DNA from: Podarcis erhardii
Taxonomy: Eukaryota
Assembly: GCA_964252035.1 (NCBI GenBank)
Contig: OZ176200.1
Length of the DNA stretch: 64,000 bases
Strand: one strand, 5' to 3'
Shown here piece after piece: positions 1,520 through 47,700 of the stretch (position 1 is the stretch's first letter; each line of letters opens with the position of its first letter). Both the position numbers and the translations under genes were made by a program. A model generated the notes under the pieces. It saw only the letters and a program-made list of their open reading frames with translations. It had not been told where the DNA came from and did not search any database.

Positions 1520-2992
1520 ACGAATATATGAATATATGAGAAGCATTGCTGCTCTTGCTTTGGGTCCAAATATCTCAAGAGGAAAGGAGAGATCCCAAAG
1601 AAGGACAAGTACATTCCATTGTCTCTTACCAACGGTGCCTAATCCTTACTGCTGCTCAACAAAGGTTACAAAGCAAAGTCAGGAAGAAAGAATTCACCCT
1701 TAGCTATGAAAAGTGAATTTCATAGGGGAGAATAGTGCTTGGGAGAGCTCTGCTTTCCAGAGTGATGGGAGTATCAACCCCCAGAATTGCCCTTCAGCAC
1801 TACCATTTGTGATGCTATTTCTAAGTCTACTCATTGCCTTAATCAAAACAGCACAATCCCAGGTACAATGTACCCCATCTGGGAAGGCAGGGGCTGATGG
1901 GAATTGTAGTCCAGAACAGCTGGAGGGCATCAGGTTTGTGAAGGCTGCAATGATACATTTGCACCAGGAATGCCCTTTGAGCCGTATCTGTATCCACGCT
2001 GCAGAAGCTAATACTTCTTATTCATGTAACAAGTATTTTAAAATCATGGATGGATCTGCAGAGAAGGAAGTGGTGCAGGAAATTTAGCCAATTACAAGCT
2101 ACAAACTCTTGCCTTGTTTCTGTCTCCTGACCACACACGCCATCTGCCTCATCAATTCCACACATTAAAAAGGGTCTGGCACCTCTCCACAAGGAAGCTT
2201 GCTGGTGCCTAATGAAGTTATCCATTCATAACAGTAAGGGCATATGCACATACAAAGTGGGTAGAAATATATGGAAACTATTTAACTGTCATGGCCCAAA
2301 GAATCCTTGGAATTGTGGTAATTCTTTGTTAGAGGAGCATGGTTGTCCTCCAGATGTGGAGGATAATGTGATGTCCTCCAGATGTTGTGCCAGCCACCAC
2401 TGTCACTGGCTAGCAGTGATAGGAGTTGGAATCCAAAAAGCATTTGGGAAGGCACCACATTGGCTACCCCTGTTAGATTCTCCCCACTACCTTCGCCAAA
2501 CAGTGAAATTCCAAGATTTCCCGGGGAGAAGGAATGAGTCTGTTGTGCTCTAAGAGTACTGTTGACCCAGATCCCACAGAACAGAGAATGATGGAGGTAG
2601 ATCATTCATCAGGACTTGGCAGAGAGCAAAGTCAAACGTGCTGCTACCTGTGATCAACTTGCCTTCCATAGTTAATCTTCAGGAAATTGATGCCACATAG
2701 GAGACAGCAGTGTCTCTGTGTGGGATAAACCTATCCACAAAGAGTGGAGTCTTTCAAAATGCCACAAGCCTTTACATTCTTCCAGGACAGGTGAATATTT
2801 GCAGTTGCCTAGAGAGGCAAATAAATGACAACTAGACCATTCGCTGAAGGTTACTGATCCTTTCGTGGAGGGAATGGTTATGTATGCAAGGCTGCCTCTC
2901 TATTTTAACCAAACAATAATTATGGCTCAGTCATACAAGTTTCCAATAGCAAGCCAGTGAACGTTGTTAGAACTGAGGTACAATAAGGTTCA

Positions 2993-3283
2993 CAGACCCT
3001 CCAAGTGTCCCTATTTTCCAGGGACGTCCCTGATTTAGAGAAGCCGTCCTGGTTTCTGATTTGATCCCAAAATGTCCCATTTTTCCTTAAGATGTCTCTA
3101 TTTTCATTGGATAAATATTAGAGGGTATAGAGTTATCCAACCCCTGAGCCATCTGAAGGCAATCCTATATAGGGAAGTGGGGTTTTTTAAAATGTTTAAT
3201 GTTTTATTATGTTTTTATATATGTTGGAAGCTGCCCAGAGTGGCTGGGGCAGCCCAGTAAGATGTGTAGAGTATAAATAGTAA
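2993..3283 (+). mobile_element. Composite repeat: hAT-like head plus L2-type tail
   Basis: CAGACCCTCCAA...TTAGAGGGTAT inverted ends (2993-3129); 3232-3283 matches the reverse complement of the L2 tail at 41825-41890. Confidence 0.6.
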
Positions 3284-5545
3284 AGGGGTTAGCAGCAGGA
3301 AGAGGGTGAGTGAGGGAGATGTGGGGTGGCAGGGTGCCCAAATAGTGGGGGTGGGGGTTGATCACCAGAATATGGCAACACTAATCCGGTAATCTATATC
3401 AGACTTCCCCAACCTGCCCTCTTCTCCACCCCCCCCCAAAAAGATACTAAACAATTGTGCACAGTCTGTTACAAAGATTAGAACAGACCATGCTTAGTTG
3501 AGCAGAAGTAAAACAAAAATCCCCATCTGCCTCAGAAGTCAGGGCCAACAGATCTTTGCATTCCTTTATCACATGCTGGTGGAACTGGTCAGCTGTGCCA
3601 GAATATACTGCACAAAATGGCAGTAGATAAATAGCCACCAGCTAGGAACCTGCTCCTAGGTGTTAATGCCCAGGTCCAAGCCTCAAAATGCTAACACACT
3701 GGTATATTTATAATGCATCTCAAAAGCCTGGCTCATAGTGCAATTGGCCCAATGATTACTTGGTATGGATTTAAAGCCATTTGGTACTGAGGAAACATTG
3801 CCCAAAGGATCCATCTGTGCTATAAGAAGCAGGGAAGGCCCCGTCATTCATCTGCCTGATGGGAGGGAAGGAGTCCAGCTGCAGGGCCTCAGCCTGAATG
3901 AAGGTTGGGGAAACCTGGAGGATATAAAAAGCCTCAGAGATGAGGGGGAGGGAGGCCATGGAACTCCAGAGAACATCCTGGGATAACTAGGCCTTTAAGT
4001 GAGGGCCTGCCACACAAAGAAGGCCTTAGCTCTTACTCTTATGTCATCTTCAGGCTCTTCCTCTGAGCACCATTGAGTAGACTCATAAGAGGGCAGCATA
4101 GAGGCATTCTAGGTATACTGTGCCCTGTTTCTCCACAGGAAGGCCCCAGGAGTCTGGGACTTAAGTTTGCCAAAACTAACAGCACAGAAGCCAGGCACCC
4201 CAAGGAAGAAGGTCAACAGGAGGGCTGTACTTATTGTTGATAGTAACCTGGGACATGGTGGAAGATGGCCTGTGAAACAGAAAGCCATCCTTTTGCGCTT
4301 CCACCACCACCTGAGACGCTTCACCCTGCCTCATTGCTGGGCCGGCTCTGCTCTCTTGGATAACCTTCCAGGGAGAAGGCCACACTCCAGCCACACAAAT
4401 GTTAAGGGGTTTCTGTACATACAACTCCTCCCTCCAGGTAAGCAAGAAGCCTTGTTACAGCTGAAGGTATGCCAGCCAAGCAGAAGAACTGGAGATGGTG
4501 CAGAATAGGTCCAGTGAGGGGTGTAGCCCCAAGTGCTGGATACCAAATGGGAGACTGGGAACGATAAGCAGAAATGCATTCATACATTTCCGATCTTGCA
4601 TCTTGTTTGTCCTGATTTACCATTACTAATGTCAGGTATGGTGCCTGTGTATTGAGTCAGCAATATACCTGAAGGATTTCAGAGTCTTTGAAACAATCAA
4701 AACATCATTTCATCCTGCAAGTAATGGATCAGGCACAAAAATGGCTTAAGGCAGCCGGTATGTAAACATGTTACATTTTGCAAGCAGCAATGCTAAAAGT
4801 TGTGGTAGTGCAGTATGTTTTCATCTCAGGATGTCCTTTGCACATGAATAGCACCCTGAAAGATGCATCAATGTTCACATATTGATTGCTCGCTACTCTA
4901 CAGTGAGCTTGCACATATATATAACCCCCTCAAATGCCATGGATAGAATTTTTAAATAATTGTAAATCTAGCACCTTCTTGCAGCCAGCCCCCTTCCCAC
5001 CATGTTTTTACCCGTTCTTGTTTTGACTGCTTCAGAATTCAGCCCAGCATTAAGAAATTCATTACTGCATCCAGTGATTGCCTCTTCACCAACAAACTTG
5101 AGAATGGTGAGCAATAAATATGTGAGCACACATTTTCAACAAGAGGAAGGTAAGGTTTAAGGAAAGATAGATAGTCAGATGAAGCATATTCAAGCATGTA
5201 CTTAGCGGCAACATGAAGGTCTCTTCAGGAAAAAGCGTAGAATTAACATTGCAAAGCAAAGTGCTTTGAGAATTGCAATAGTTATTTTACACAAAAGGCA
5301 CCAATCCAGTGGCTGTTCTAACTGGAGGACTTAACATTCCTTTCGACAATTGCTTGGTGGGTGATCAAATTTGCATCATAAGCCGAATCCAGCATGCTGG
5401 ATCCAGTGAGTGTGCTTTTCCCCACACCAAGCCCTTTCTCTACACATTTTGGCCCTGCAACATGCCATTGGTTTGGTGCCAGTGCCATCTCACAGAAAGA
5501 GTTGTATAAGCAGGTTAGTATGATTCTCCTACCTTAGTCTGAGAA

Positions 5546-5626
5546 TTACTGATCAGGGATGGGAAATGATGGGATTAAGGTACAATGTCCATAATTCATT
5601 ATCGGACAGTTACTGCCCTGGAGTCT
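5546..5626 (-). CDS. FLVCR2: Candidate FLVCR2 terminal coding exon 10 (RLQGSNCPIMNYGHCTLIPSFPIPDQ*)
   Basis: Phase-0 acceptor tacAG after a long AG-free pyrimidine-rich stretch; starts RLQ (human KLQ); length similar to the human last exon; weak sequence support. Confidence 0.55.
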   Translation of the reverse strand, partial: RLQGSNCPIMNYGHCTLIPSFPIPDQ

Positions 5627-6504
5627 CTGTAACAACAGCCATATGTCACAATCCCAAAGAGGGGCAGAATTAAAACAAAAACAGGAGGCACAGACAGATA
5701 GACAGACAGACAGGGAATCATGATGGAATAAGCTGGTGAAACTCTGCAGAACTGAAAGCGAGTGAGACTTTTGATCACTAAAAATTCCACAGAATGTTCA
5801 GCTTTATAAGCCCTGGACTCATTCCAAGGCACAGAAGATCTGATTAACCTAATCCCTGAAGAATTATGTAGTCTCAATGTTAAATAAATTCATTTATTTT
5901 AGCTTACTTCTCTTCTGCCAATTTGTTTCACTTTAAGTAAGGAGGCTCCAAATGTTCAGATTAGCATTTTGGGGTCTGAAAGTTATATATTAATGTGGAG
6001 CAATGTGTCCCCCCTTAAAATAAAATGAAACCAATTGTGCATTTCTCACTTATGCTTGTGATTCTTCTCAAGACCACTGTGCTCCACCTCTCTGTCGTTC
6101 CTTCAGCACCATGTTTTTCCTCCTCTTTTACAACATTATCCCTAGCAATCAGGGATCATGCAGCAAACATGATGGTGCTACAATGCGGTGTCATTAATCA
6201 AATTTGGTACTATCAGAACATCACTGGAAAGTAAACAAAGCCAATTCTGAAATAGGTGCTTTACATTGTTTGTAGGTCATTTTATTATTGCGAGCCACCC
6301 TGGGCTCCCTTTGGAGAGGGAGGGTGGGTTTTAAATTTGAAAGAATAAATGAATTCAAAGTGAAAACAATGCTTTCCACATGACATTACCTTTCCACATT
6401 ACCCTGGGCAAAGGAACACATCAATAGGCTGAACGGGTGCCACAGAGAGAGAAGCACTGATACCATTGTTGCCTGGGCTGCTGCCAAGCAAACATGCTAT
6501 AGCA

Positions 6505-6641
6505 CAGGGGTGGGGAACCTTTGGCCCTCCAGATGTCGCTGAACTATCATTCCCATCATCACTGGTCATTGGACATGTTTGCTGGGGCTGATGGGAGCTG
6601 TATTCAGCAATATTTGGAAAGTAAATTTCCCCCCACTACTG
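6505..6641. mobile_element. Palindromic hAT MITE (degenerate)
   Basis: CAGGGGTGGGGAA left end and internal palindrome as in the 62719 copy. Confidence 0.6.
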
Positions 6642-8413
6642 TTGCAGTCACTTCTTCTCCTGGTAAGACAGCGATGACACATTTTGAGATACCCTCCCCA
6701 CCCCCAAAGAAAAACAAAAATCAGGATAACAATGTGAATTAAAGGAAACTCCTCTCTTTTGGCTTAGTCCTATTTGTAACTCCACAATTCAGAATCCAAG
6801 ACCAGAATCTTCATTATATATTGCAGAAGAGAATCCTTCATTTACCCAATTCAGCATGACCTGATTCAGAGTTAGAATTGCCTCCCCCCCCCCCCCCGTA
6901 GAGATTCTGTCCCTTTTAATAACTGCGTAACAGGCAAGTCGTTCCCATCCTGTATCCCAGGAAAAGGTTCAGTTGCTGAATTCTTGCCTGCCACGCAGCT
7001 GTCTAGAGCACAGGTACCCTGTCAGAAAAACAGTTCACTGCATAAACTAAATATTTCAATATTTGGCTTTACACAGAAGAATCACATAACTGTCACTGTA
7101 TCGAGTGCGGGGAGCTTAAACATTAGGAAGTTATTTGAAATTTGTTAGTTTTGTTTGCCTTTTCAAGAACTGTCTTCTGATGAAGATTTAAAACATAATG
7201 ATGACCCAGGTTGTACTCAATATGTCTGTTTTGAAGTATTGAGTACAGGTAACTTGCAACTCCCGTGCATTTAACTTGTGTTTTACACACCTGGCAAAAA
7301 AATAAATAAAAAGAATGCAGAAAGGAGGGAAAAAACTTTGGCAATCCCACCCGCCTTTGAACCCAACGTATTTTGACCATGTGTGTTCTTGGCTTTACTC
7401 ACTATGCCCAGAATGTAACCCCAGGGTAAGTTGAGAGTCACCTGTACTACTGTGCGTCTGCTACAAAACTTTGCCAAAGATATATGCCAGATACAAAAAT
7501 CAAATAGTCAGAATATAGACAACAAAAGTAGCAAGGAGAACTTTGGAGGAAAAGCTTATGGAAAGCAGAAATGCCCATCTGGTTCCTGTGCCCAAGGGTC
7601 AACTTACAGGCACAGTATCTTAGAGATGGAAGGGATCAGTAGCCCATTCCTCAGCTGAAAGGCAGGATCACCCACCCATCAGACAGTGTGCCCAGTGACA
7701 CCTTTACACTGTGAGCACCATCACATCCACCCTCTATCTTGTTGCACTGTCCCATGGATTGCATAAGCCCATCTAGTCCCTGCAGGGCTCTTATTATGTT
7801 CTCAGAAACAATTACCAGGGATGCTGGGAGTTGCAGTCCAGCAACATCTGGTTCCCTAGTCCTAAATGAATTTAAGATAAGCCAGAACAGCTCCCTGCTG
7901 GAGCCTCCATCATCCCTCCCAATCTGCTCTGGAGGGTCCGCCAACACTCATTGGATTTGGGGAACTCTCCATGGCACATTTTGAGGCACATAGTGGGCAG
8001 GTAGGAGAGTAGTTTCAGTGTGCACAAGTGAAGTCCATTGTGCGAGTAGGACACCACCCCTGGATATTACCCATGATCTTTCACCTTTCTTTAAGCAGCT
8101 GTATTTGCATTTACTTAAGGTTACAAACAGCCTAACACTGGTCTGGCTAGTGCACCAGATGTATGCCCTCAAACAGAGAGATTGCCAGCCTGTCTCTCTC
8201 AGTACTCGCAGCTGGTCCCAGGCACATGCCACACTTTCTCCTGGAGGAGAATCCAACAGCATTCAACCGTTAACAACCCAAACCTGGCACAGCTGAGGCA
8301 GCAACAATACTCCCTCAAGCTGGCACAGTTATTCATCACAATAAAAGCAAAGGAGACTCACAGGTGCAGACGGTTGGCCATAAGCTACCAGCATAAATAT
8401 ATGATTTACTCAC

Positions 8414-8469
8414 AGTCTGTTCATCGCGCAGGTTGGCCTGCTGTCTCCGGAGATCTGCTTTGATGAAAG
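8414..8469 (-). CDS. FLVCR2: FLVCR2 exon 9 (56 nt)
   Basis: ccAG|(A)FIKADLRRQQANLRDEQT|GTGAGT; 56-nt size as recalled for FLVCR2 rather than FLVCR1. Confidence 0.93.
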
Positions 8470-9077
8470 CTGGGGCATTGGAGGAAGAGAAAACAGAGCC
8501 AGGAAGTCACTGTGTGTTGACCATAAGCAGCTCTTCACAGAGCAATGGAGTTCAAGGCAGGGCAACATGAAGAACATGGCTTACGACTCAGAAAGCACAA
8601 CGGAAGTAGGGAACAGGGTCTGCCCTCTCCATGGTGGAAAATAAATTATTTTTAAATCTTAGAACATCTATTCCACTTCTTAAATCTACTCCACTTCTTA
8701 GCCACCCAAACAGGTCCCCAAGGCAGCTTCCAGATTAAAAGCACAATAACACAATAAAAATACAACAGGATATTAATTCAATTATTAAAACAGCAGCATG
8801 GAAGGACACAAAACAACTGGGTTGGCATAAATAGAGCTATTGGAGAAAGAGGATTTTCTTTGCATTTTAATGAGAAAGGTACCTAATGCTCACTTCCTGA
8901 ACGTACATGCAAACTGAAACACAGCAATTTTACTTGCAAAATTGTGTGAGTCAAAACTGCATACAAAAAAAAAAAATGTGTTTGTTAGGAGAAATTTTCA
9001 CTCAAAGGCATCTCAGCCTTTTGGCTAAGAAACCATCCTCTATTTTTTAAGACGCTTATGAATTATCATGAGAATTA

Positions 9078-9110
9078 AAATAATAATAATGATGATGATG
9101 ATGATGATGA
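9078..9110. repeat. (AAT)n(GAT)n microsatellite
   Basis: Direct reading. Confidence 0.9.
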
Positions 9111-9335
9111 AATGCTACAGAAATGTGGAGTACTGAGTTTAAGACTGAAAGAGAAAATAACTGGAAGAACCAAATTTGACCGATTTGCCATCCCTAGGTT
9201 AAAAATAACCATTCAAAGTGATTCAACGTTGCAGCCCTACCCTAAACGTCAGTACTTTAAGCTGGGGTAGCAATACAAGAGTTGTAGGAAGCAGGAGCTG
9301 AAAAGGGTTTGACAATGATTGGATAGTGTAGTTAC

Positions 9336-9447
9336 CAGTTATAACAGTGCCGACAAACAGGAAGCTGCAGAGGAAGAGGTTTCCTGCTTGAGTTCCAAAA
9401 TGTTCAAAGATCTGTGCTTGGCTAATGGTGAAAATTATTCCAAATAT
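9336..9447 (-). CDS. FLVCR2: FLVCR2 exon 8 (112 nt)
   Basis: tcAG|IFGIIFTISQAQIFEHFGTQAGNLFLCSFLFVGTVIT-G|GTAACT. Confidence 0.94.
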
Positions 9448-9499
9448 CTGAAACAAATTCAAACAAGAGTTACAAAGAAGAAACTGAAGAAAGCTACTG

Positions 9500-14984: not shown

Positions 14985-15592
14985 CAGTGGCGTAGCGTGG
15001 GGGGTGCAGGGGGGGCCGGCCGCACCGGGCGCAACATCTTGGGGGGGCGCACTCACCGCCTCCGGAGTCGTCGAAGAGCCTCGGGCGCAGGCTGTAGCAG
15101 AGCCCCATGTCTCACAGAACCAACGAGCTGTGCGCACGTCTGGCCTGAAGGTGTCCGGCAGGCAGCGGCTCTCAGCGCTCGCCGCGGTCCCCGCGCTTCA
15201 GGGCCGCGGAGGGCGCGCCAGGCAGCCCCTCCTCACAGCCCCCCCCCGCCCCCGCCGCCGCCGCCGCTGCAGCTGCTGGGCCATGTTGCATTTTCCTCGC
15301 CTCTCTGCCCTCCTCCTCCTCCAGGCAAGCGGTGTCGTTTGGGCGGCAGTGCCAGCAGCAACTCGCCTCAGATCACCTGACACGGACCCGCTGCCGTGGC
15401 TACCTTACCGTAAACACCCCAGCCCAGGCAGCGGCAAGAAGAAGCTGGCAGCGGCGGCAGGTTAGGGGTTAGGGGCGCAAATTACTTGCCTTGCCCCAGG
15501 TTAGGGGGCGCAAATTACTTGCCTTGCCCCGGGTTAGGAGGTGCAAATTACTTGCCTTGCCCCGGGTGCTGACAACCCACACTACGCCGCTG
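14985..15592. mobile_element. Non-autonomous hAT-type element, long 'loaded' copy
   Basis: TIRs CAGTGGCGTAGCGTGGG / CCCACACTACGCCGCTG; perfect 8-bp TSD GGCACAGC; three subterminal ~34-bp repeats; GC-rich passenger about 15041-15459. Confidence 0.9.
15046..15108 (-). pseudogene. GNAL: Captured fragment of GNAL XL-isoform exon 1 (start codon region)
   Basis: Translates MGLCYSLRPRLFDDSGGGECA, 14/21 identical to recalled human XL-Golf MGLCYSLRPLLFGGPGDDPCA; then runs into TE terminus; no further GNAL sequence. Confidence 0.8.
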
Positions 15593-36929: not shown

Positions 36930-37500
36930 CATAGCTGTCAACTTACAGATTTGAAAATAAGGGACCAGCAGCCTTGAAAATAAGGGACCACCAGCCAAAA
37001 TAAGGAACCTGCAGCCTCACCTGTTCCAGGCACTCCAGTCTTCCTGTCCTCCTGCAGTCTGGTCAAACTCATGCTGGTAGCTTCGAGAACACTGTCCAAC
37101 CAACTTTGTAACCAGAGGTTCAACTAACTAGAATCTGAATCACATGCACCACAAGGCCTATGCAGCCTCAACTTAAGATGGCTCCGTGGCCTGGCTTTGC
37201 ACTGCAAAGTTTGCAGTAGCACATGCAACAAAATGGTGTCCAGCATTCAAAAAAAACCCTCAGCTTGCATTAACTAGCCACACACAAGGCATGCAAGCTC
37301 CACCCCCCAGTCGTTCTTAGAATTCTTATTGGGTGAGCAACACAGCCAAGCAACACAGTTGGAGCCTTCCTCTTCCCTGGCCGGCAGGGAGGGAGGGAGA
37401 GGAGCTGCTTCCTTTGAAATTTAAGGGACATCCATAAATAAGGGACATGGCACTGGAATAAGGGACTGTCCCTTCAAATAAGGGACACTTGATAGCTATG
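36930..37500. mobile_element. hAT-type element with passenger (includes Bov-B piece)
   Basis: TIRs CATAGCTGTCAA / TTGATAGCTATG; perfect TSD ACCTGTAC; AAATAAGGGA subterminal repeats. Confidence 0.88.
37028..37102 (-). mobile_element. Bov-B 3'-region fragment lacking tail, inside the hAT at 36930
   Basis: Reverse complement of the WLDSVLEATSMSLT...segment of the Bov-B copy at 27.5 kb. Confidence 0.8.
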
Positions 37501-37544
37501 ACCTGTACCCTCTTTAGGGAAAAGAGGGATCCCACTCTCCAATC

Positions 37545-38338
37545 CAGGGGTTAGCAAACTTTTTCAGCAGGGGGCCGGTCCACCGTCAATCAGACCTTGT
37601 GGGGCCAACTATATTTTTTTTTGGGGGGGAACGATTTTCGCCCGCCCACAAAGAGGCCTGAAGATGCTTCGCTTTACCTGTCCCAGTTGCTGTCCCAATA
37701 GCTGCAGTTGGGTTTCTCCAGCCAGCCAAGCGCCATGGCAGAGTAGGAGGCTGCGTTGGCTGGCGAAGGCAGAAGCAGCAGCCCCAGCAGAGGAGCCGCG
37801 GACGGAGGTAGGGGAACCAGAGCGTCGCGGAAGCTTTTACCCACCACCTGCTGCTACCGCTTCCCAAGGGGCAGTGTGAAGACAGAGCCTCCTGCCAACC
37901 CGCAAGCAGCGGCTGTGGCCACCGCAACAGCCTGCCTGAATGCCATGGGAGGAATGAAGGAGGGAGGGAGGGATGAAGAAAGCGTGTGAGGAAGCGGCGC
38001 AGAGAGGGAAGGAAGGGCAGACTGAGGGAGAGGAAGGAGGAGGAGGAGGAGGAAAATGCAGCAGCGGCCGGCAGCTGGCGTCACATGCCCCCTTCACAGC
38101 ACCGCCCTGCTGAGGCAGGCAGGCGGGTGAGCTGACTACCGCTATCGATGGCACCAGGCATGGGACAAGATTGCTTCATCCCTGAGGAGAAAAGCGCAGC
38201 CGTGTGAGGGAAAGAGAGGGAGAGGAAAAGAATATGTGCGCTGGCAATCCACTCTGCGATTCCTGTACCGTTCATGGGCCGGATCTAGAAGGCAATTGGG
38301 CCTGATCTGGCCCGTGGACCTTAGTTTGCTGACCCATG
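37545..38338. mobile_element. Non-autonomous hAT (Charlie-like termini) with passenger
   Basis: TIRs CAGGGGTTAGCAAACT / AGTTTGCTGACCCATG; degenerate 8-bp TSD CTCCAATC/GTCAAATC (6/8); GC-rich interior. Confidence 0.8.
37678..37946 (-). pseudogene. PGAM5: Captured PGAM5 exon 1 copy with donor site, one in-frame stop
   Basis: MAFRQAVAVATAAACGLAGGSV...GKR*...YWDSNWD-AG|GTAAAG; both ends match recalled PGAM5 (MAFRQALQLAACGLAGGS; WDPNWDR at exon 1 end, phase 2). Confidence 0.85.
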
Positions 38339-38382
38339 GTCAAATCCCATATAAAGGATCTATCTTTGAGTTCTATTTGACC

Positions 38383-38385
38383 TTT

Positions 38386-38429
<44 letters not shown>

Positions 38430-38470
38430 TCCTCCCTCCTTTCCTTCCTTCCTTCCTTCCCCCCCTCTCT
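38383..38470. repeat. (TTTC)n/(TTCC)n microsatellite
   Basis: Direct reading. Confidence 0.95.
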
Positions 38471-40273
38471 CCCTCTGTCTGCATGTGTGCATTTCCAGAC
38501 AACTCTGGCAGAGGAACTGTTCAGCTGCTGACTTAGGTCTCTAACAGCTCAATCAGTTCTACAAAGTTAAGTGTCTCTGCTATGAAGAGCCATTTAAAAT
38601 GCATCAATGGTACTTGTTGTGAGAGATCATTCTTAAGGACGTGCAATTTCAGTCCGGTGAGACAAGCACACTTATCTCTTTTCAAATGCATACAGCAATC
38701 TTCACCATCACCTTCATATGGAAACATTTGCTTCCAACGACACTGACTTTTAATGATCACAGCTATTATTATGCCTATATCTTCTGCGTGTGCAGAACTC
38801 AGGAAGTGCGCCTGAAAGCCAAGGCATCTTCTTATTGCGCAATGTCAGCATCAGGCACTTCCCTTTTGCCTTCAGCAATCCACACCTGTGAGGGGGAAGA
38901 ACCTGAACACAGAGCATTTCTTATACAGGAGCCGGAGGGAAACTTATTTTGTTTGCTCTTGTTCAGCTCCGTAATATCCTGATTTTAGAAAAGAACATCA
39001 TTATTGAGCACAGTAGATGCTAGCAATAATATTCTGTCTAGGACAAATAACTGCAGAGCACCATACTTGGCAAGAAAATAAAGAAAGATTTTCAAGTAAG
39101 AGGATCCATCAAGTTTGCAGGAGTACTAATACATCCCCTATGGTGGCCATTCATTGCACAGAAAATGTTCCAAATACAAGCTATTATAAAGTAGCTTTGT
39201 TCATTGCTCACCTGACTGGAAGCACACTTATCTCCTTTCAAATGTGTACAGCAATCTTCACCATCACTTCCAACAAATTATAAAACAGCAATAAAATATC
39301 AAACATTAAAAACGTACCTGTCTCTACCTATTCTGACAGAAACATAACCTTTTATACTCCTTTTGTTTGTTATTATGTTATGCAGTTTTTGTGTTTTTTT
39401 ATTATAAACTGGTCCTCACTATCTTAACAACAAACAGTTTAATAGGGTGTGATTCACCTAATGAGCCCTTGGCAAGGACTTCTGCTTCCCCAAATCTCCT
39501 CTTCTCAGGCACCCACCCAAATTGGCTTGGGGGGTTTCTGGAGAACCCCAGAACAGTGTTTGCTGTGGGCAGGGAGGGGAGGAGAGCATTTCAACTGGCT
39601 AGCTAAAACACTTCCACTGACAGAAGGATCAGAAGAGCATATTGCTGAATACAACTCACAGTCTTTGAGGGTTGGAGGGATAGTTGCATGATCTTATATT
39701 TAAAATGAAGGCCTTAGTTTCACAGTGAGGCTAACCACAAACGCAAAGGCAGGAGAGTCCTGGGATTCCCTCTTAATCAAGATAAAAGCGGCAAATGCAT
39801 GTGGGAATTCCCTTTGATGCAGCAGAATCAGCATTTAGGGAGACGGCACTAGAGCAAGGATAGCCAATGCTGTGGTCTGCAGATATTGCTGGACTCCCAC
39901 CAGCCCCGGCCAGCATGGTCACAGATGATGGGAATTGTTGTCCTAGCCTAGAGCATCTGTTGGATTCCACACTGGCTAACCCTGCGGAAGGATAGAGAAC
40001 ATTGAACACTTCCGCCACATCATGCACAAACAAACTCACGAGAGACAATTGTACTTTGATGTTCATGTACATTTCCTTTATTTTCCCCTGCCCAGGAAGC
40101 CACTTCTCTGATAACAATGCCAATTTTGAAAGGAGGGGGAAGTATAGAGCTCAGATCTGCTGCCAGTATCACAAGAGAGCCACTAATTGTTTTTAACTGT
40201 CTTTATTGATAATTTTAATATTTATCATAGTAGAGGTTTTACTACAATCATGCGGTATTATAAATGTTGGTTA

Positions 40274-41802: not shown

Positions 41803-42256
41803 ATGATAATGATAATGATAAGAATTTATTATTTATACTCCGCCCATCCGGCTGGGTTTCCCCAGCCACTCTGGGCGGCTTCCAACAAAATATTAAAATA
41901 CAGTGGTTTTTTAAACATGAAAAGCTTCCCTAAACAGGGCTGCCTTCAGATGTCTTCTCAAAGTCTGGTAGTTGTTCTTCTCTTTGACATCTGATGGGAG
42001 GGCATTCCACAGGGCAGGTGCCACTACCGAGAAGGCCCTCTGCCTGGTTCCCTGTAACTTGGCTTCTCGCAGCGAGGGAACCACCAGAAGGCCTTCGGTG
42101 CTGGACCTCAGTGTCCGGGCAGAACAATGGGGGTGGAGACGCTCCTTCAGGGCCGAGGCCGTTTAGGGCTTTAAAGGTCAGCACCAACACTTTGAATTGT
42201 GCTCAGAACATACTGGGAGCCAATGTCGATCTTTCCAGACCGGTGTTATGTGGTCT
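41803..42256 (-). mobile_element. L2 LINE 3' fragment
   Basis: FKVLVLTFKALNGLGP RT C-terminus and GAAGCCGCCCAGAGTGGCTGGGG tail with microsatellite end. Confidence 0.85.
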
Positions 42257-43149
42257 TATGTAGAGGAAAGGACTACCTCCTTTCCTCTAGCCCCCAGCAT
42301 CTCTTTGTCTCTGACCTTATACTATTGAACAAGATGGAAATAGTTGGTATTATTTAATTTGGTGGTCCTCAAACCCTGTTTGGCCATGGACCACTGCTAA
42401 GAATATTGGTGGACCACTCAATGATTCTTCTGTGTATTGTAGCAATTACAATGGTGATAGATGCTGTATGATTTGTAATTTTATTTTTGATCGCTTCTTT
42501 CATTTCCGTATGTTGGACAAGGTTCAACGTACTTTGTCCCTTCTGTGCCCCCACCCACTAATTTATTTATTTTGATGGTGTTGCCATTGCAATGACATGA
42601 CAACTTGCTCAATTGATCTGAAAGAGGCACCAGGACACATAGTGGCTGCTTTGGTGGCGAATGCACAAGGATTAATACAAAAAAGGCCCCCCATTAAATG
42701 TGCTTTTAATGGAAGGTGTGGGTGTGACCAGAGATCCTTGTAGAGATCAAGTGAGCACTGACAACAGGGCGACTTTCCCAAAGACCTTCCTTTTTACCCT
42801 GGCATTTCCTGATTGTAGATATTGAAGTTTTATTTTAGTTGTGGCTGTTGCAGCTGAACCGCTGTAGTTGAATCACTTTGAGATTCATACATTTATAAAT
42901 GAAAAGCTGTATCTAAGTTTTGAAAGACACAATCGGAATTCTATAAACTTCAACCTGCAACACAATATAAGAAACACAAATGCAATAGAAAATCAGTACA
43001 AATATTAAAAGGCAACGGATGCACCATCTCCTATTTTCAGCCACAGATACACTATGAAGGATCTGAGTCAAGCCTGTGGACAGCTGGTGATCTGTGGATC
43101 ACAACTTGGGAACCCGTGGCTTAATGCATACCTGAATATTTTGCCACCT

Positions 43150-44720
43150 ACCTGGTTACCAAAGACAGCGATGGAGCAGGCACTGGAGACCTCCCGGGAC
43201 CCAAACCAGACGGAAGCGATGTGGGACGGCATGCCCAGGATGAAGACTTGGGCCAGCGAGCAGACGACCTGTCCCAGGACGGTGACGGGGAAGAGGTTTG
43301 GCTTCGTGCTGCCCGTCTTCACCCAGGCGCCCACGCAGTTGAGAGCGGAGCCCGCCAGGGCGATGAGGCGCAGCCCCTTCTTGTCGAGCAGCCAGGCGAC
43401 CGGGAAGAGCAGCGGGATGTAGACGAGCATGTAGCACATGGAGAGCCAGTCGATGGCGAAAGGGGTCACGCCGTAGAAGCGCGCGAAGACCACGCTGATG
43501 CTGCCGTACTGGATCCACTGGAAAGCGTTGCAGAACGAATAGGCGCTGAAGAGGAACACGATTGCCCAGCGGCGCCGCGTCAGGCGCACCTCCGGCACCG
43601 ACCCCGGCGCCGACCCGTTGGGCGTCTCGGCGTCCGCCGGCTCGGGCTTCGACTCTTGCAGCAGGTCGGGCTCGGCTCGGTACCCCGTCCGCTTCTCTCC
43701 CAGCTCCGGCTCCCCGCTCACCATAGCGGCCGAGGAAGTGCGCGCTGAGCGACAAGTTCCTCCTCCGACGGCGGGACACCAGCGCGGGCTCGGGGACCCC
43801 TCGCTCTTCCCTCAGCCAGCAGCCCCGGTGCCGCGAGCGCCCCCCGCGCGCCCGCCTCGCCTCGCCGGACTTTCCTCCTCTTGCGCTCACCTTTCGCGGC
43901 TCATGTTGCCAGCTCAAGGTTTGCCTCCGCGGCGCACGTCACCACGCCCCGCCCGCCGAGGCGCGTCAGCCAGAAACCACCGCCCCCCCCCCCGGCCCGC
44001 GTTGGAAGGAGCTACCTGGACGCCCACCACCACGCCCCTCCGGGCGCGGATTGGCTGCCTGCCCCCCGCCCCTCTGCGCTGCTTCCTGCTCTTGCTATGG
44101 CAACTCTCTCCGTCCCGCGAAAAAGCCCCGGGAGGGGCGCAGAAAGTGGCGCAGGCGCGCGCCCCCCGACGGTCCCGTCCGGGAGTCTGCAGCCGCGCGG
44201 CGCCGTTAGCCGTGCGCCCTGCGCAGCCTCCGGGAAAGCGGGGTGGGGGTGGGCCTGCCGAGCTCTTCTCCCGCCTTCCGCTCGCACCTTTTCGGCGGCC
44301 TCACGAGCTCCCGCTTCGTTTTGCTCTGAGGGCGGGAGCGCGGGAAGGACCTGACAAAATTCTTCCGGCGGCGCGTCGACCGAGAGGAACGTGGCTCGAA
44401 AGACCGCCAGTCATCCGGTCCTAGTCATTAGCTTGGGGAAGAGGGGGGCGACGTCCCGGTTCGCGGGCTGCCAGGCTGAGGGTGCGCACACCGACCAGGT
44501 CGGGTCCCCCCCCCCCTCAATTCGGATTGGAAAGTAAACGGGGAGGGTGCGCGCAGCCTGCCGGTAAAATCGGGGGCTGAAGCTGCTTCCTAGTTCCTGG
44601 TTCGCTGCCCGAGGCAAAAGCGACTTGATAAAAGAGCGGGGAACCAACTCTCTGTCCATAGCACAACGGGGCTTGCAGGTCAGTGGCCGAAGTCCCGGGT
44701 CGCAAATGACCTCCGAGAAA
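43150..44720. promoter_or_regulatory. FLVCR2 CpG island / promoter
   Basis: Very GC- and CpG-rich over exon 1 and upstream; GC/KLF boxes at 43942-43954 and 44030-44038, CCAAT (minus) 44050-44054, NRF1-like GCGCAGGCGC 44149-44158. Confidence 0.85.
43152..43724 (-). CDS. FLVCR2: FLVCR2 (MFSD7C) coding exon 1, 191 codons
   Basis: ORF MVSGEP...[27 protein letters not shown]...VFGNQ matches the FLVCR family N-half; ends at CAG|GTAGGT donor (phase 0); inside CpG island. Confidence 0.96.
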
Positions 44721-47700
44721 GCAGCAGATGTTGGGGGCAGATCCAAAGCTAGGGGCCCAGAGAGGATGGCGCAGACTCCTGCACATCCTTCCTTCTCAAC
44801 TCTTTTTTAAGTGAGAAGGTAGCTGGCTGTGCATGGTAACAGATGCTCATTGCATTATTTTTAGTTTTAAAATATATTATCCCTTTATAGAACAATGTGG
44901 TGCTGATTCCCAAGTTATTACATTTCACATCAGGACAGCAGAAACAAACTCTTGTTCTTGTGGTGCTCTGAAGGGAGTGAATACAGAATGAAAAACAGCA
45001 CATGCTGAGAGTATTTATTTACCTTTAACCAGGGCTGGCAAACTGTTATCTGTTTGTTTTTTGCTGTAACATATCAAGAAAGAAGCATTTGTAAAGCATG
45101 AGGAGGAGGCGGAGAAGAGAAATACTCTCTGTGAAGTGATAAACATGGCTATTTTAAAGCCCCACCCATATCCCCCACCCACCTTAAGTCCAGAGTCTAA
45201 AATTCCCTAGTGGCACCACTGCAGTAAGTTAAGCACTGAAAAGAAAGTCTATTAATACAGCTTTTCAGCAGTATAAAGCAGAACATTGTAGTGCAATGGT
45301 AGAAAGATCCTTCTGACCTCAGTTGAAGTCGGTAGCACTTGCTCTTTTTGCAAAAGCTCATTATATCACAGAACAGAGTTTCATAAAACTGAGTGAAATG
45401 CTATACAAGCACCTTCAGTTGGGGGAACAGGGCTCTGTACAAAGAGAGTAGCAGCAGCCGACAAGTCAATAACGGATTCAGCAGAGAACTGGGTCAGCTC
45501 CCACTGCAAAACATAACACTTGGCTCCTGATGCAAACAAAAGAGCATGTTCTCCCGCTCTTGTGATGGGGAGGGGGAGGAGAGGCATCAAATCCAGCTGC
45601 AGACATTTTCGGCATCTTTTACATTGTAGTCCTAAGCATATTTACTTGGAAGCAAGTGTCATTGATCTCAGTGGAACTTAATACACAATCTAGGAAGTAA
45701 GGGTTGCAGCCTTGTAAGCTCAAACTGAATCCAGAGAAGATGGCGGTACGGTTAGTAGGTGGTTCATCAGCCCTGATAAATTGTATTGAGTTTGTTCTAG
45801 TAAGGGGTACATAAAATATGAATAAGGTACATATTCTGGGCACTTCCAGACTGTCTCCCCCCCCCCGCCAGGTGAGATTCAATTGCATCTTGGCAAACTC
45901 TCACTGCACAATTAAAGCTGGTTTGGGAGCGCTTGCAAAACAAACCCACTTCCCCAAAAGATCAGATTTATATTGAAAAGGAAAGTGAACAGAAAATGCA
46001 CTGGAAGGTGTGGGATAACACATCATCCAGTCTCTACTCAAATAAATCAGGAGAAATGCTCATTAGACAGCTGACACATAATCATATCTCTCTGCAAACA
46101 AATCAGGCTGAATGCTAATTAAACAGGTAATCTGGAAGCAAACTTTGTCGTTGGAGACATAGATTGCTTCTCTAACATAGAGTGCTATCCACTTGATTAG
46201 CCTGGACTAGGGGGGCTAAGCTAGTCCTGGTTTTGGGAGGGAGGCAGCAGGGTTCCATCATTCTGTCTGAGGCCTGGTGAAGGGAAGAGTGTTGTGTATG
46301 CAACATTCCCTCTCCTCTCCTCCATCGCCCTCGCAAGCTGGTGTCTCTGGTCCTAACTGTTCCCCTATGCAGCATTTCACCGCACTCCACTGTAGAATAG
46401 CATTTGTGATTATTAGGTAGCTGGTTCTGCAAGAAGTTAAGGATTAAAAACATATAAATTCAGAGTTGATAAGCCGGCTACGGACACTAAAAACCATTAA
46501 CTAATGTCAATGGCATTAGTTTGATGCATTCCCTGTTTATGGCTCATTTATGGGCTAGAACTAATTTGGAAAGGCATTTTACTAGCTGTAATGGATAAAC
46601 ATCATGAGGAATAGGCTCTGCAGGTAAGAAAGGTCAATTACCTTTCCAGTATTAAACAGGCAGTTCAAACTTCATCTGGCATGCAAGCACAATAATAGCA
46701 TATGAACGATTTATGAGCTAGGCAGGTTTAACATGTTCTACTGTAACAAGTCTATAAAATGGTTTTGCATGCATCTTGGGTTGGTTTGCATGCATCTTGG
46801 CAGAAGGTGTTGCATCTTGGAACTGAAGACTAGGGTAGCATATTATAAATGCAAAATTCTAGGCCTGGTTCTTTGTGTGATTTACCTTAGAGAGATTAGA
46901 CCCCTGTTTCTAGTTGTAGTTTCATGACTGGAAAACTCATTACTTAATCCCTGTTGTGTGGAATCTTGGGTCACCCATGGCTAACTCCCTAGTCCAGTGG
47001 TTCAGAACCTGCAGCCTGAATGTCGCGCATGGAGGGAATGCAGGGGAGCCAAAATGGATAGAGTGATGGGAGGAGATGTGGGTTAAAGCCTTCTACAACT
47101 GTTTGATTCAGGCCTCTGGCAAGAGTGGCCTGTCCCTTCCCCCCCCTCCCCGAAGCCCATTGGGTAGGGAGAGACTGTGTCAAGCGATGGCCCCACTCAC
47201 TTTTGTCTCCAGCCATCCCTATTATTGGCTTTGTTGGGATGCAAGGTTGAGTCTTATGCAACAAACCCACTTTTCCCACTTTTTGCAATAAGGAAAGTGA
47301 TGAGGAAACACACTGGAGAGTGTCTGACCTCCCCTCAAAGAAATCAGAATCTAGCCAATGTTGTGTAACCTCTGAGTAAAAAAATCAGGCAGAATGCTCA
47401 ATAGCATGTCCAGTGACCATCATAGCTTGGCCACAAACATCATTTCCTGTTTCCTGTGCTTTCACTAGCTTTTCTAAACTAGGATATTATTCAGTTTTCA
47501 TGTCCGATGTTTGAACTTAAATTCACTTCTTATGACTTTAAGGACAAATAACATACTCAAGAGCCAAGAAAACACATTGTAGGCCCCTGCAGCGTAGATT
47601 CACCTCACTCTTGACCTGTAGCTAAACCAGATGAGCCCTACACAGCTGCGCTCATGCCGTTCCTTCTCCCCCTTGTGCTTTCAAGTTAAGTGGACAGACA

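Follow-up and report, generated by a model that had tools for sequence, protein, structure and literature searches.

In plants there is ample documentation of cut-and-paste transposons that capture gene fragments; in animals such capture is considered rare, with captured fragments mostly present as single copies. A survey of such Pack-TIR elements in 100 animal genomes reported 370 cases, 208 of them in hAT elements (Tan et al. 2021; PMC8277862). Only four of the Pack-TIRs were multicopy, one example having three copies in Xenopus, and the multicopy elements favoured GC-rich DNA, whilst the single lizard genome analysed (anoCar2) gave no Pack-TIRs (Tan et al. 2021; PMC8277862). The corresponding plant elements, Pack-MULE and Pack-TYPE, prefer GC-rich 5' regions of genes and often form chimeric transcripts (PMC8903248).

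The element described here lies at positions 37545-38338 of a 64-kb stretch of DNA (the window) from the lacertid lizard Podarcis erhardii. It very probably belongs, as a decayed copy, to a multicopy lacertid family of Pack-TIRs (Pack-hATs) whose cargo derives from PGAM5, the gene of a mitochondrial phosphatase, and which was amplified after one capture. We found no paper on a PGAM5-carrying lizard transposon, and searching the literature with the printed N-terminal peptide likewise returned none. The lizard elements most closely recall Pack-hAT-N8_XT of Xenopus tropicalis, which carries the CAPSL 5'UTR: in both, the interior of a non-autonomous hAT element has been replaced by a few hundred base pairs of GC-rich DNA from the 5' end of a gene, element and parent gene are unlinked and the copies stand at separate sites with distinct TSDs (PMC8277862). 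The lizard family is, however, estimated at tens to about 100 copies as against three in the frog (PMC8277862), its cargo comprises upstream DNA, a complete first coding exon, a splice donor and the start of an intron, its host is a lacertid, and it is old and decayed rather than young. The capture and amplification of gene fragments by TIR elements is shared with the plant systems (PMC8903248); unlike Pack-MULEs, the lizard element is an hAT with an 8-bp TSD (9-11 bp in Mutator), resides in an animal and carries one fragment from one gene rather than a mosaic.

In every feature tested, the lizard PGAM5 family fits a multicopy Pack-TIR. The interior is host-gene DNA (matching the PGAM5 loci of Podarcis muralis, L002 4733-5320, and Zootoca vivipara, L004 2708-3321), no transposon arms abut exon 1 in the parent loci, three sequenced copies have the same junctions, two of these have TSDs of their own, and read depth over the cargo is 13-148 times that of single-copy DNA. 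The family stands out in its copy number, in its host lineage and in a cargo that takes in, as one complete block, upstream DNA, exon 1, the donor and the start of the intron. Because the parent is unambiguous, the junctions are mapped to the base, the empty carrier is known and tens to about 100 copies are present in several species, it is a good system in which to ask how captures arise and whether host genes gain new transcript starts from the scattering of a CpG-rich first exon and its working splice donor.

The 794-bp window element has the structure of a non-autonomous hAT-type transposon, much as the original prediction had it. Its TIRs (CAGGGGTTAGCAAACT at 37545-37560 and, as reverse complement, CATGGGTCAGCAAACT at 38338-38323) match at 14 of 16 positions and it is flanked by 8-bp TSDs, CTCCAATC at 37537-37544 on the left and GTCAAATC at 38339-38346 on the right, that agree at 6/8 positions; a match of this quality between flanking 8-mers has a chance probability of about 0.004 (binomial estimate). 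When the TIR motif was searched for with two mismatches allowed, the two element ends were the sole sites in the 64-kb window, with 0.09 expected by chance. The termini fit the 5'-YARNG pattern of hAT elements, one reading CAGGG and its counterpart CATGG, the latter being a decayed CAGGG (the family majority letter gives CAGGGGTCAGCAAACT). The TIR-bearing arms, at 37545-37632 and 38258-38338, are, like the TSDs, given without a strand. Both are found in high copy number, very high for the first, and many CpG sites in the second have decayed to TpG or CpA.

Arm abundance was estimated by mapping the contigs of three DNA runs and the raw reads of one RNA run onto 37200-38700 at 80% likeness or above. 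In one of the DNA runs (X1), summed contig depth over 37545-37607 and 38271-38338 reaches about 3.3 million, as against about 132 for the single-copy flank at 38477-38700, which puts the arm family on the order of 10^4 copies; the element ends thus belong to a repeated family, the absence of which the original prediction had named as grounds for its rejection. A scan of metagenomes for the arm sequence gave no match.

A cargo-free relative of the element is found in Zootoca vivipara, at the PGAM5 locus (L004:1545-1768). The two window arms align to its ends, the 38258-38338 arm corresponding to positions 3-84 of this 224-bp element, so that both TIR ends have been kept around the cargo in the window copy; the arm at 37545-37632 aligns in addition with arms in the two P. 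lilfordi copies described below (L001 and L003). The orthologous site in P. muralis (L002, around 3805-3815) is empty, reading ...CTG CCTTAAAT GTATAG..., whereas the filled site in Zootoca reads CCCTAAAT, element, CCTTAAAT, a clean 8-bp TSD. As read from this filled/empty pair, the transposon family moved after the Podarcis/Zootoca split, and the 8-bp duplication together with the YARNG-type termini supports the assignment of the window element to the hAT superfamily as a putative non-autonomous member; it may belong to the Charlie subgroup. Neither the window nor the other loci examined yielded an autonomous hAT element or a transposase. The Zootoca insertion is lineage-specific and is separated by about 0.94 kb, on the upstream side, from the PGAM5 segment present in the composite element. 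With around 10^4 copies in the genome, its proximity to PGAM5 is probably a coincidence.

Between the arms, the cargo is arranged on the minus strand. Reading inwards from the 38258-38338 arm, an outer low-complexity part of uncertain origin (38197-38257) is followed by DNA that in the parent lies directly upstream of the PGAM5 start codon (37947-38196; 5'UTR and proximal promoter region), a broken copy of the exon-1 coding part (37678-37946; colinear with L002 5001-5275) and the first 45 nt of PGAM5 intron 1 (37633-37677), starting with the GT donor at 37677-37676. The minus-strand frame is exactly as originally read: the ATG at 37946 is followed by 30 codons (MAFRQAVAVATAAACGLAGGSVFTLPLGKR), a single TAG at 37856-37854 and a further 59 in-frame codons ending in YWDSNWDR, the last exon base (37678) completing AG before the GTAAAG that begins at 37677. 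In addition to the TAG at codon 31, this exon-1 copy has a 6-nt deletion at around 37878/37877. The cargo as a whole has a GC content of 0.61 and a CpG observed/expected ratio of 0.5, as against CpG ratios of 0.16-0.24 in the flanks; the values for 37947-38196 are 0.60 and 0.54. This composition accords with the reported preference of multicopy Pack-TIRs for GC-rich DNA (PMC8277862).

Identification of PGAM5 as the parent came from searches at both protein and DNA levels. A word-based protein search with the 59-aa piece returned a 64-aa 'hypothetical protein' of Podarcis lilfordi as its one match, and the locus that encodes it (L001) contains an intact 92-codon ORF. A phmmer search with this ORF, run over 1.84 billion representative proteins, matched one protein from Naja naja (E 1.3e-13) and a 'PGAM family member 5' from Chelydra (E 8.9e-8), both with a His_Phos_1 domain; the named matches in this search that bear His_Phos_1 are PGAM5 proteins. 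A second search, with the Naja N-terminus as query, retrieved PGAM5 proteins from birds, turtles and a large number of squamates, Zootoca and three Podarcis species among them. The broken window ORF was searched as two separate pieces, one alignment carrying an X at the stop. A further search match (P0007, 4396 aa) was set aside, having no real alignment to the ORF.

Against residues 1-92 of P. muralis PGAM5, the L001 ORF (L001:9922-10197) is 84% identical with no gap; the two window ORF pieces reach 75% and 78% identity to that protein. At the DNA level, the minus strand of 38196-37633 is 80.5% identical to P. muralis L002 4733-5320 over 595 nt, and the Zootoca vivipara locus (L004 2708-3321) is about 80% identical to the cargo, bearing out the PGAM5 origin that had been proposed from the window alone. 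The P. muralis gene, at L002 5001-19307, adjoins ANKLE2. The coding part of its exon 1 (L002 5001-5275) ends in phase 2 at AG|GTAAAG, as the original prediction had it for the WDPNWD-R end of PGAM5 exon 1, and exon 2 (..REPLALMNL..) lies about 6 kb downstream. The features expected of a PGAM5 source are present in the cargo, namely the N-terminal membrane anchor (MAFR..ACGLAGGS), WDxNWD at the end of exon 1 and a phase-2 donor.

The parental DNA in the cargo comprises 268 nt upstream of the ATG, the whole of the exon-1 coding part, the true donor and the initial 45 nt of intron 1. On the intron side, the expected match to the parent was found, 42/45 positions of 37633-37677 being identical to P. 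muralis L002 5276-5320; homology to the parent ends at GAAAATC (window 37633) and the transposon arm starts at GTTC. We considered whether 37608-37665 might instead be ordinary interior of the transposon, so that just about 10 nt of intron would be left, and rejected this: the empty element at L004:1545-1768 matches far worse than the PGAM5 intron does. On the other side, the suggested match to the 5'UTR and promoter was borne out for 37947-38196 by BLAST (L002 4733-5000 and L004 2708-3000) but not for 38197-38257; these outer 61 nt are common to the three known copies, align poorly to both parent loci and are weakly like the parent's DNA further upstream.

The original prediction had noted a middle about 25 codons longer than in human PGAM5 and had offered lineage-specific length and a mosaic among the explanations. 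All reptile and bird PGAM5 N-termini in our alignment have a longer exon 1 with the motif PPGLLLLPSP...GW.EK...YWDxNWDR, and since every one of them carries the extra middle, its length is lineage-specific and the mosaic explanation falls away. The excess over mammals is around 25-28 residues. The mammalian row in this alignment is elephant-shrew PGAM5, whilst the human comparison rests on a published account in which the WDxNWD motif includes W58 and W62 (PMC5501728). One further protein, from Gekko kuhli (P0009, 111 aa, labelled UNVERIFIED_CONTAM), has a PGAM5 exon-1-like segment ending YWDINWDR and continues with non-PGAM5 sequence; it could represent either read-through into an intron of the gecko gene itself or a further duplicated fragment.

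The composite is not confined to the window. At P. lilfordi L001, a second complete copy is 79% identical to the window element over 726 nt and is flanked by its own 7/8 TSD (GGTTAGAT / AGTTAGAT). A third composite copy is present at P. lilfordi L003, where no recognisable TSD was found. The three copies have identical arm/cargo junctions at both ends, lie at unrelated loci and share differences from both parents, including 9-nt deletions at alignment columns 156-164 and 247-255. In a maximum-likelihood tree, they form one clade with 97% support that is nearly star-like, with copy branches of 0.11-0.13 and a branch of 0.03 to each parent; in the site patterns, 25-29 changes are private to each copy and nine are common to all three. 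As judged from these comparisons, the three copies share one origin and stand at separate sites. Their shared junctions, shared differences from the parents and grouping as a clade (97%) argue for a single capture.

For an estimate of family size, read depth was taken over the cargo outside the low-complexity stretch 37945-38065. In run X1 the depth is 1778-9467 over 37608-37862 and 2992-6257 over 38067-38270, against 132 for a single copy, giving about 13-72 copies, and the same calculation for a second run (X10) gives about 47-148. Each variant site is typically covered by 20-40 distinct contigs, in three species. These figures suggest a family of roughly 15-130 copies per genome in three species, a crude value in being based on summed contig depth, and one that leaves the number of full-length members uncertain because depth falls toward the centre of the cargo and several contigs have internal deletions. 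Many family members may have lost part of their sequence or may have diverged too far to be counted. The genome-wide copy count that the original prediction had called for is available as this depth-based estimate, which supports multicopy status. The window copy is one decayed member of this multicopy family and the capture is not specific to the window locus. A contig of run X1 near-identical to the window over 37660-37944 has a depth of 74, as against 132 for the flank contig at 38477-38700; the insertion might be heterozygous in the sequenced animal, or the difference might be noise in contig depth.

The copy branches are also informative as to age. Podarcis and Zootoca differ by about 7% per lineage in the non-coding DNA upstream of PGAM5, and since the copy branches are longer than this, we infer that the burst of amplification is, roughly, as old as the Podarcis-Zootoca split or older. 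The window copy would likewise be ancient, in agreement with its decayed TSD, the CpG-to-TpG changes in its arm, the TAG and the 6-nt deletion.

Could the PGAM5 sequence have reached the element in some other way? A processed PGAM5 mRNA fragment retroposed into a transposon would account for the presence of exon 1 alone and for a poly-A/T-rich run near one of the arm/cargo junctions. The cargo, however, contains an unspliced donor followed by 45 nt of intron 1 as in the parent, includes at least 268 nt of upstream DNA, and has neither exon 2 nor a poly-A tail at its end, leaving this explanation with a vanishingly small probability. The intron start (matched at 42/45) and the upstream DNA (268 nt) being retained, retroposition is excluded and the cargo is, on these alignments, captured genomic DNA, as the original prediction had argued from the donor and about 45 nt beyond it. 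It is scarcely more credible that the direction was the reverse, the cargo being the older and lacertid PGAM5 exon 1 having been derived from the transposon: the same exon-1 architecture (MAFR..ACGLAGGS..WDxNWDR, with REPLAL in exon 2) is found in snakes, geckos, turtles, birds and a mammal, the parent loci adjoin ANKLE2, and no arms abut exon 1 in either parent, the arms being unmatched in the P. muralis locus and the Zootoca locus having only the insertion about 0.9 kb upstream. That a local duplicate of PGAM5 5'-end DNA came by chance to lie between two unrelated transposon fragments is extremely improbable. Whilst the imperfect TSD (6/8) in the window and the very common occurrence of the arms in the genome would allow such an arrangement, the same composite with the same junctions is found at two other, unrelated P. 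lilfordi loci, one of which has its own 7/8 TSD, and cargo depth is many times that of single-copy DNA in three species.

Capture of genomic PGAM5 DNA by an hAT element, the reading that we prefer, could have proceeded as follows. An empty non-autonomous hAT of about 224 bp would have lost a 76-bp interior and gained about 625 bp from the 5' end of PGAM5, comprising about 270-330 nt upstream of the ATG, the whole of the first coding exon with its donor, and the 45-nt start of intron 1. Template switching would be the most likely route, either while an excision gap was being repaired or where a replication fork had stalled; both gap-repair and fork-stalling template-switching models have been discussed for such captures (PMC8277862). 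Homology at the junction between the replaced 76-bp interior and the parental intron was at chance level (a score of 9, which was reached in 87/500 shuffles). The composite would then have been mobilised in trans by an hAT transposase and amplified to dozens of copies.

What the window copy carries is a gene fragment rather than a PGAM5 paralogue, because only exon 1 has been copied. The His_Phos_1 catalytic domain that a functional PGAM5 copy would possess is lacking: PGAM catalytic motifs were not found anywhere in the window, Pfam searches with the window ORF pieces gave nothing meaningful and a search of PDB sequences with the 59-aa piece gave a spurious match only.

The setting of the element nevertheless raises the question of whether it acts on a host gene. 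A minus-strand exon at 43071-43724, a large first-exon-like ORF, matches the Pfam family MFS_1 (E 1.8e-10) and is probably the CpG-island first exon of a host transporter gene. The element lies in an intron of this MFS transporter gene, in sense orientation and about 4.7 kb downstream of the MFS_1 exon. In P. lilfordi, the first ~128 residues of a gene model for 'ephrin type-A receptor 5 isoform X3' (P0006 / P0013) are a translated cargo copy, including a frameshifted stretch, that reaches the PGAM5-type donor and then continues with Eph receptor sequence. This N-terminus may be either a chimeric transcript or an annotation artefact; taken at face value, the model would suggest that host exons can be joined by splicing to the cargo module (GC-rich upstream DNA, first exon and donor).

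The sense orientation of the window copy within the intron, its intact GTAAAG donor and the use of a sister copy as first exon in the EPHA5 gene model could all be taken to favour a functional copy, one that is a coding mini-gene or that provides the MFS gene with an alternative promoter and first exon. Such a function is very unlikely: with its stop at codon 31 and its 6-nt deletion the copy is heavily decayed, and the dN/dS ratio between two copies, 0.58 from few sites, gives no clear constraint. One RNA run (organism G) did provide 15 strand-specific reads, with 12 distinct starts, on 37710-37862 in the sense of the ORF. At 16/16 positions where these reads differ from the window, however, they have the letter of the P. 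muralis parent, and four of these letters are absent from the Zootoca parent and from all copies. Since the differing letters equal those of the parent, the reads derive from real PGAM5 mRNA, and in this one run, from a species other than that of the window, transcription of any cargo copy was not seen. The window copy is most likely without function now.

For the family as a whole the prospect is somewhat better, though still doubtful. Its members would serve as portable modules, dispersed over the genome and made up of upstream DNA, the first exon and its donor, and some of the ~100 copies may give host genes alternative 5' exons or promoters. If true, this would amount to the shuffling of first exons by a Pack-hAT, on a scale so far undescribed in vertebrates. 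There is also a warning here for annotation, as PGAM5-like first exons in lacertid gene models (P. lilfordi EPHA5 X3 and several 'hypothetical proteins') are transposon-derived.

Several other features of the window were noted. The left flank at 37250-37540 is a very high-copy repeat (depth in run X1 up to 1.6 million) with reiterated GTCCCTTA-like units, and an (AAAG)n/(AAGG)n microsatellite lies directly to the right of the element at 38378-38476. The zone 42000-46000 is GC-rich (GC 0.51-0.55). A second cargo-carrying hAT is present at 14985-15592, beginning CAGTGGCGTAGC; it resembles the PGAM5 element in being short and of hAT type, in carrying GC-rich cargo that looks like a first exon and in lying in the region of the same host gene, but belongs to a different TIR family and carries a different cargo. 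We considered whether the two cargoes are related, there being a 53-nt match of 79% between 38030-38077 and 15270-15321. This match is low-complexity, (CCT)n-like sequence and was treated as chance; the (CCT)n-like stretch of 38030-38077 is also present in the upstream DNA of the PGAM5 parent.
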